NCBI GenBank assembly: GCA_009103225.1
Contig: RHPI01001965.1
Coordinates: 387,114 to 451,113 of the forward strand
Direction: 5' to 3'
Source: Chlorokybus atmophyticus
Lineage: Eukaryota > Plantae > Mesostigma and Chlorokybus algae
DNA: 64,000 nucleotides
Shown here: piece by piece, positions 3,276 through 3,552 of the stretch
How the letters are laid out: the number at the start of each line of letters is the position of its first letter
How positions within the stretch are numbered: the first letter of the stretch is position 1
The notes under the pieces: model-generated
What the model was told of the DNA's origin: nothing
The model's input: the letters and a program-made list of their open reading frames with translations, nothing else
Database searches by the model: none
Position numbers and translations under genes: made by a program

Positions 3276-3501
3276 AGCACGCCGTCTGTGACTGAAAATA
3301 AGCAACTCACAGCTTACAAGACTGTTGGTTTGCAAGTTGCAACGCTCGGCTTTCAGCTTTTGCCTCTCACCTCAAGCTCAAGAGCCATTTGAATGCTTCC
3401 ACTCGAGCACTGTGTTTGAAACACACACGCATGCGTTGCGCGGCTGATCCTTAGCACTGTTAGCAATATCCGTGCAGGCGTCTTCTCCGACGCGGCCATA
3501 T

Positions 3502-3552
3502 GTACGGTACGCGCTGTACAGAACCCGGGCGGTTGCAAACCGCGTACGGTAC
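3502..3552. promoter_or_regulatory. Cluster of five GTAC cores (SBP-domain/CuRE-type sites) upstream of paralog 1
   Basis: GTAC at 3502, 3507, 3516, 3544 and 3549, including two GTACGGTAC doublets, about 230-280 bp upstream of the ATG at 3275. Confidence 0.55.

Follow-up and report, generated by a model that had tools for sequence, protein, structure and literature searches.

A cluster of GTAC cores as a candidate SBP-type regulatory element upstream of one of two tandem orphan genes in Chlorokybus atmophyticus

Introduction

Chlorokybus is an early-diverging streptophyte alga placed at the base of the streptophytes. In the green alga Chlamydomonas, the promoters of genes targeted by CRR1 work with one to a few GTAC cores. 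More extended groups of the same core have been described in Arabidopsis, where the SPL7 target FSD1 carries eight GTACs in its peak (PMC9516184) and the MIR156d promoter also contains eight (PMC8430956). The core is not a property of CRR1 and SPL7 only; it is common to every SBP-domain factor, and the competition of the SPLs for GTAC sites has been discussed (PMC8430956, PMC9516184). The SBP family originated at the base of green plants (PMC7455551). In Chlorokybus there are two SBP-domain proteins, Chrsp82S07966 and Chrsp179S02511, both of which are placed outside the groups formed by land plants, the SPL7-type group 4 among these (PMC10796333). An SBP factor able to read a GTAC cluster thus exists in the host, but as GTAC is common to all SBP factors such a cluster by itself is no indicator of copper control.

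The locus described here lies in a 64-kb stretch of the C. atmophyticus genome, which was analysed as a whole and is referred to below as the window. It holds a tandem gene pair, and the 5' flank of one of the two genes (copy 1) carries five GTAC cores within 51 bp. This places the locus in an already-known kind, that of promoter GTAC clusters in the green lineage. The original prediction had interpreted the cluster as a copper response element (CuRE) by which copy 1 would be inducible under copper limitation or hypoxia, and which would have been specifically mutated in the second gene (copy 2). Our preferred reading, to which we give somewhat less than an even chance, is a cluster of SBP-type binding sites that would provide copy 1 with a regulatory input distinct from that of copy 2.

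The tandem gene pair and its products

The window contains a tandem duplication of about 3.9 kb, in which positions 1625-3278 pair with 5528-7187. Copy 1 (Chrsp64S07171; 1690-3275, minus strand, ATG at 3275) has eight exons, located at 3275-3158, 3035-2925, 2781-2736, 2638-2524, 2369-2217, 2127-2035, 1954-1874 and 1731-1690. The joined exons sum to 759 nt and are in frame with a single stop at the end; all acceptors are AG, and the donors are seven GT and one GC. Copy 2 (Chrsp64S07129; 5591-7184, minus strand, ATG at 7184) encodes 252 amino acids. The two proteins are 77% identical. Alignment of the minus strands gives 76-89% identity for the eight conserved exons and 61% for the introns, the latter to be read against a baseline of 42% obtained with shuffled sequences. 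The interval that separates the two copies, 3660-5590, has no evident gene.

The public model of copy 2 (P0124, Chrsp64S07129) has the same 252 amino acids, while that of copy 1 (P0121, Chrsp64S07171) has 240 and is without 12 residues that copy 2 has. Inclusion of exon 3 (2736-2781, minus strand; GC donor, AG followed by GCAAAC) restores the homologous segment FDFVNFDYALF and yields 252 amino acids in frame, and the missing 12 residues in the public model of Chrsp64S07171 are probably an annotation error.

Both paralogs have a signal-peptide-like N-terminus (MARSYGAAAT...ALAQ), and the eight-exon model of copy 1 contains 10 Cys. A word search of 5.8 billion proteins with P0121 matched the two paralogs only, and phmmer with exon 5 against 1.84 billion representatives returned P0121 itself and two spurious repeat proteins. 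The description of the product in the original prediction, as a secreted and uncharacterised protein, agrees with the N-terminus and with these searches. There was no Pfam match on the exons or on the public models of either paralog, no relative was found in the PDB, and neither resource gave a metal- or copper-related domain for the copy 1 protein. The searches of 5.8 and 1.84 billion sequences pointed to no copper-sparing, copper-uptake or hypoxia function for copy 1, nor to an orthologue in a known copper regulon. The AF2 model of the paralog protein is poor (pLDDT 47) and its Foldseek rows, all with E > 0.1, are mostly right-handed beta-helix enzymes; the ESM-atlas neighbours are of the NosD/Beta_helix type. 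A right-handed beta-helix fold for this orphan secreted protein of about 250 amino acids may be taken as a lead only, and the Pfam label "periplasmic copper-binding protein (NosD)" carried by the ESM-atlas neighbours is no evidence of copper binding by the paralogs.

Downstream of the gene pair, at 8808-9134, there are long (CT)n and (GA)n/GGGAG-rich tracts with inverted repeats around an apparent run of N. To judge from runs of X in the translations of open reading frames, this run would be an assembly gap.

The GTAC cluster upstream of copy 1

The five GTAC cores of copy 1 start at positions 3502, 3507, 3516, 3544 and 3549; their number and their span of 51 bp are as originally reported. On the strand of the gene (minus) the cluster, 3502-3552, precedes the ATG at 3275 by 228-278 bp, so that GTAC cores are present in the proximal promoter, as in a CuRE. 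The stretch 3490-3552 has the order GACGCGGCC-ATAT-GTACGGTAC-GCGCT-GTACAG ... CGC-GTACGGTAC-G; on the sense strand of the gene the cluster reads CGTACCGTACG ... TGTACA ... CGTACCGTACA. GTACGGTAC does not occur elsewhere in the window. Four of the cores are part of a 10-nt direct repeat, GTACGGTACG, the first copy of which is at 3502-3511 (sense strand CCGTACA) and the second at 3544-3553 (sense strand CCGTACG). The two copies are 42 bp, or four helical turns, apart and the sequence between them is unrelated.

Both doublets, which read ACCGTACG and ACCGTACA on the sense strand, match the extended SBP consensus CCGTAC(A/G). Just 13 sites of this type are present in the 64-kb window, and two of these are the ones 42 bp apart in the cluster. 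The shorter context CGTAC is found at four of the five cluster sites vs a background of 37%, a difference that is not significant (P = 0.064).

Two structural origins were considered and rejected. The cluster contains a weak inverted repeat (19-nt arms, 79% complementary), and a hairpin or cruciform was discarded when 3490-3565, folded as single-stranded DNA, proved no better than shuffled sequence (z = 0.69). A transposon or repeat origin was discarded as well, BLAST of positions 1-5590 against the window having returned only the paralog and a 44-bp block located further upstream of the genes.

Comparison of the two promoters

The promoters of the two copies share a few conserved blocks. The anchor GACGCGGCC (also given as GGCCGCGTC) at 3490-3498 is identical in copy 2 at 7427-7435, and a block of 23 nt, with the sense-strand sequence GCCGCGCAACGCATGCGTGTGTG, is common to 3422-3444 and 7345-7367. 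The distal block of 44 bp (3617-3659) is 84% identical to 7577-7620; upstream of the genes BLAST picks up no other similarity between the copies. This block is likely to be a regulatory footprint common to both. Its identity is well above the 61% of the introns, and it holds half sites of the TGGCA/TGCCA type and, in copy 2, also CCAAT...ATTGG. Between the conserved blocks the two copies are 45-64% identical.

Copy 2 reads GACGCGGCC-GTCG-CTACGGAAC-AGCGTT-GTGGAC at 7427-7459, precisely the sequence given in the original prediction. That prediction had described the aligned GTAC cores as broken in this copy, and in the MAFFT alignment this is true of all five: opposite the five GTACs of copy 1, copy 2 has CTAC, GAAC, GTGG, ACAC and GTGC at 7439-7497. 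None of the five sites is conserved between the paralogs. The further claim that the sites had been specifically mutated does not follow. The GTAC columns are identical at 13 of 20 positions (65%). The corresponding values are 32 of 51 (63%) for the remaining columns of 3490-3560, 61% for the introns and 59% across the promoter as a whole. At a per-site identity of 61% a tetramer survives with p ~0.14, and therefore the loss of all five (p ~0.47 by drift alone) is about a coin toss. Targeted mutation of the GTAC sites in copy 2 was accordingly rejected, as their columns diverge at the rate of their neighbours and of the introns.

Copy 2 has in addition two GTACs of its own, which had been overlooked. 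They start at 7547 and 7559 within CCGTACCCACACTAGTAC (sense strand; 7547-7562), about 363-378 bp upstream of the ATG, in a stretch without a copy 1 counterpart in the MAFFT alignment. Copy 2 also has a TATA box, TATATATAA on the sense strand (7315-7324, minus strand), about 131-140 bp upstream of its ATG at 7184; no TATA box is present in the aligned stretch of copy 1, 3385-3396. By analogy with the TATA box of copy 2, transcription of copy 1 may start about 100 nt upstream of its ATG. If the start lies about 30 bp downstream of the TATA position in both copies, the cluster would be placed some 140-195 bp upstream of the start.

The promoters of the paralogs thus differ in the GTAC cassette, the GTAC pair and the TATA box. 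From the claim of regulatory divergence after duplication we retain that one paralog has the cluster in its proximal 5' flank and that the promoters differ, while the targeted loss of sites has to be dropped. The difference would seem to be ordinary promoter turnover, in which all but a small number of conserved blocks change at a neutral pace. Orthologous promoters for footprinting were not available, the protein searches (1.84 + 5.8 billion sequences) having given no orthologue. A mild argument for function comes from the same divergence: since about 39% of neutral sites differ between the copies, the five intact tetramers of copy 1 would be unlikely to persist or arise without selection.

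Density of GTAC cores in the window

GTAC occurs 237 times in the 64-kb window, a rate that predicts about 0.18 per 51 bp. The five-GTAC cluster itself is confirmed. Dense clusters were defined as those with at least five GTAC in 60 bp, and the window contains two, at 3502-3552 and at 42435-42478. The chance of at least one dense cluster per window is 0.012 when 237 sites are placed at random and about 0.003 in 300 first-order Markov simulations. GTAC cores are thus statistically over-represented, as a cluster of SBP-box sites would call for (P ~0.003-0.012 per 64-kb window), a result that becomes weaker if each doublet is counted as one unit. The five cores of copy 1 are not independent, because the 10-nt GTACGGTACG occurs twice, and when they are taken as three units their density is no longer notable, at least three in 60 bp being expected about 3.8 times per window. 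Once the two dense clusters are set aside, the window does not depart from the null model: adjacent GTAC pairs within 12 bp number 6 vs 4.9 expected, and at the other promoters of the 64-kb window there is no looser enrichment, no stretch of 150 or 300 bp being above the maximum of the null model. In a genome of more than a thousand 64-kb windows, a handful of five-core clusters would be predicted by chance alone.

These figures bear on the alternative that survives best, namely that the cluster is non-functional and due to chance or to a micro-repeat, with GTACGGTACG present twice beside one more GTAC in neutrally drifting promoter DNA. The stretch has diverged between the paralogs as much as the introns have, its density as three units would be reached some four times in each window, the hairpin predicted for it is no stabler than that of shuffled sequence (z = 0.69) and sequence support from outside the Chlorokybus genome is absent. 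Against it, the window holds not one but two clusters of at least five GTACs where 0.003-0.012 are expected, and both are in 5' flanks; moreover slippage would not be expected to leave 10-nt repeats at a distance of 42 bp that are separated by unrelated sequence. We regard it as a serious rival, if a somewhat unlikely one.

The second cassette at 42.4 kb and other features of the window

The only other dense GTAC cassette in the window is likewise in a 5' intergenic region. It contains six GTACs, mostly as GGTACA/TGTACC, is palindromic, and is located at 42435-42478, 5' of a minus-strand gene for an ABCG transporter (Walker A exon 41023-41172; ABC2_membrane exon 38842-39285). Directly adjoining it, at 42401-42427, is the perfect palindrome GTGGCACTGGCAA-C-TTGCCAGTGCCAC, the arms of which are 13 nt long. 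The two cassettes, which are the only dense clusters in 64 kb, resemble each other in density and in their 5' intergenic position. They differ in that the one at 42.4 kb has GGTACA/TGTACC flanks and is strongly palindromic, and nothing is shared beyond GTAC itself. A flanking motif common to both was searched for and rejected, as shared 8-10-mers are near chance level.

The palindromic nature of the second cassette raises the alternative that these are functional elements read by a factor other than SBP, or architectural elements in which a palindrome-rich cassette positions nucleosomes or start sites. The long palindrome of GGTACA units at 42435-42478, beside the perfect 13-nt-arm palindrome and unlike the CGTAC-type sites of copy 1, would fit this idea. 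No GTAC-reading factor family other than SBP is known in green plants, the copy 1 cluster is just weakly palindromic (19-nt arms, 79%), and it is not at a bidirectional promoter, the interval 3660-5590 being devoid of an evident gene; for these reasons we consider this alternative improbable.

Two more observations concern the remainder of the window. The single-exon open reading frame 30577-31800 (minus strand) encodes 407 amino acids of a RimO-type (ribosomal protein S12) methylthiotransferase and is 100% identical to eukprot jgi/Chlat1/7666, a match that assigns the window to C. atmophyticus. Positions 46900-47100, inside the open reading frame 46455-47270, have more than 60 Pro codons in one frame, with an ambiguous base, and may represent low-complexity sequence of the formin or extensin type.

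Discussion

The cluster upstream of copy 1 is probably a functional cis-element. In the preferred reading of an SBP-type binding-site cluster, the TATA-less proximal promoter of Chrsp64S07171 would carry a homotypic cluster of GTAC cores, made up of two GTACGGTACG doublets on the same helix face, 42 bp apart, and one TGTACA. This arrangement may serve as a putative landing platform, most likely for one of the two SBP-domain factors of Chlorokybus. Copy 1 would by this means gain a transcriptional input that is absent from copy 2 or weak in it; the promoter of copy 2 has instead a TATA box and, at a greater distance, two GTACs. Several points count against the SBP sites: the density as three units is common by chance, the excess of CGTAC is not significant, a handful of such clusters is predicted genome-wide by chance, and the stretch with the cluster is no better conserved between the paralogs than the introns (63% vs 61%).

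It is less easy to go from an SBP site to copper. In the strict sense, a copper response element at this position would be bound by a sensor similar to CRR1 or SPL7, copy 1 would be induced by copper limitation or hypoxia, and the gene would be part of a copper regulon. In favour of such a role, GTAC is the essential core of CuREs and copper-responsive Arabidopsis promoters are rich in GTACs. Copper sensing by SBP factors is found in land plants as well as in chlorophytes and is therefore probably ancestral; in Chlorokybus, two SBP proteins have to share all roles. In opposition to this, SBP factors are not told apart by GTAC, no Chlorokybus SBP protein is in the SPL7 group (PMC10796333), the protein is without a metal-related domain and without relatives in known copper regulons, and a GTAC cassette is also found at the unrelated promoter of the ABCG gene (42435-42478), which is unlike a narrow copper regulon. 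No paper linking Chlorokybus with GTAC cassettes or copper responses was found in the literature. Control by copper, as originally proposed, is on this balance quite improbable.

If the cluster of copy 1 is a working SBP site, as in the reading that we prefer, the tandem pair amounts to a clean natural experiment between neighbours that are 77% identical: copy 1 has the GTAC cassette but lacks a TATA box, and copy 2 has the TATA box together with just two GTACs at a distance. A wider hypothesis, which we hold to be unlikely, is that Chlorokybus uses dense GTAC cassettes repeatedly as a promoter module, perhaps once in every 30 kb, that one of the two SBP proteins reads them, and that transposons and giant mobile elements have adopted them for their own genes. 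If true, there would be a broad ancestral SBP regulon with copper control as just one part of it, and copy 1 and copy 2 would represent a natural case of gain or loss of SBP input after duplication. As Chlorokybus is basal in the streptophytes and has just two SBP proteins, knowing which of the two reads the cassettes, and in response to which signal, would reveal the role of SBP factors prior to the SPL radiation in land plants. One predicted cluster of motifs in front of an orphan gene is of modest weight by itself, and the genome-wide pattern, if confirmed, would be the more interesting one.

Comparison with known systems

Among the described systems, the CuREs of the Chlamydomonas CRR1 targets CYC6, CPX1, CRD1 and HYDA1 are alike in that GTAC lies no more than a few hundred bp upstream of the gene and that the host is a green alga with SBP-domain factors. 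The copy 1 cluster, a predicted element, differs from them in its five GTACs in 51 bp and in its target, an orphan secreted protein without a link to copper.

The Arabidopsis SPL7 targets FSD1, MIR398b/c, MIR408 and MIR156d share with copy 1 the homotypic clustering of GTAC cores. Their sites are supported by ChIP and expression and have a preferred GTACTRC or AGTACA context, whereas the predicted sites of copy 1 are CGTACC, CGTACG, CGTACA and TGTACA, and Chlorokybus has no SBP protein of the SPL7 group (PMC10796333).

A further comparison is with the generic SBP-box of the SPLs (TNCGTACAA; CCGTAC(A/G)). The cluster has two matches to CCGTAC(A/G) on the sense strand and four of its five sites are CGTAC, while a full match to TNCGTACAA is not found within it and the excess of CGTAC is not significant vs the background of 37%.
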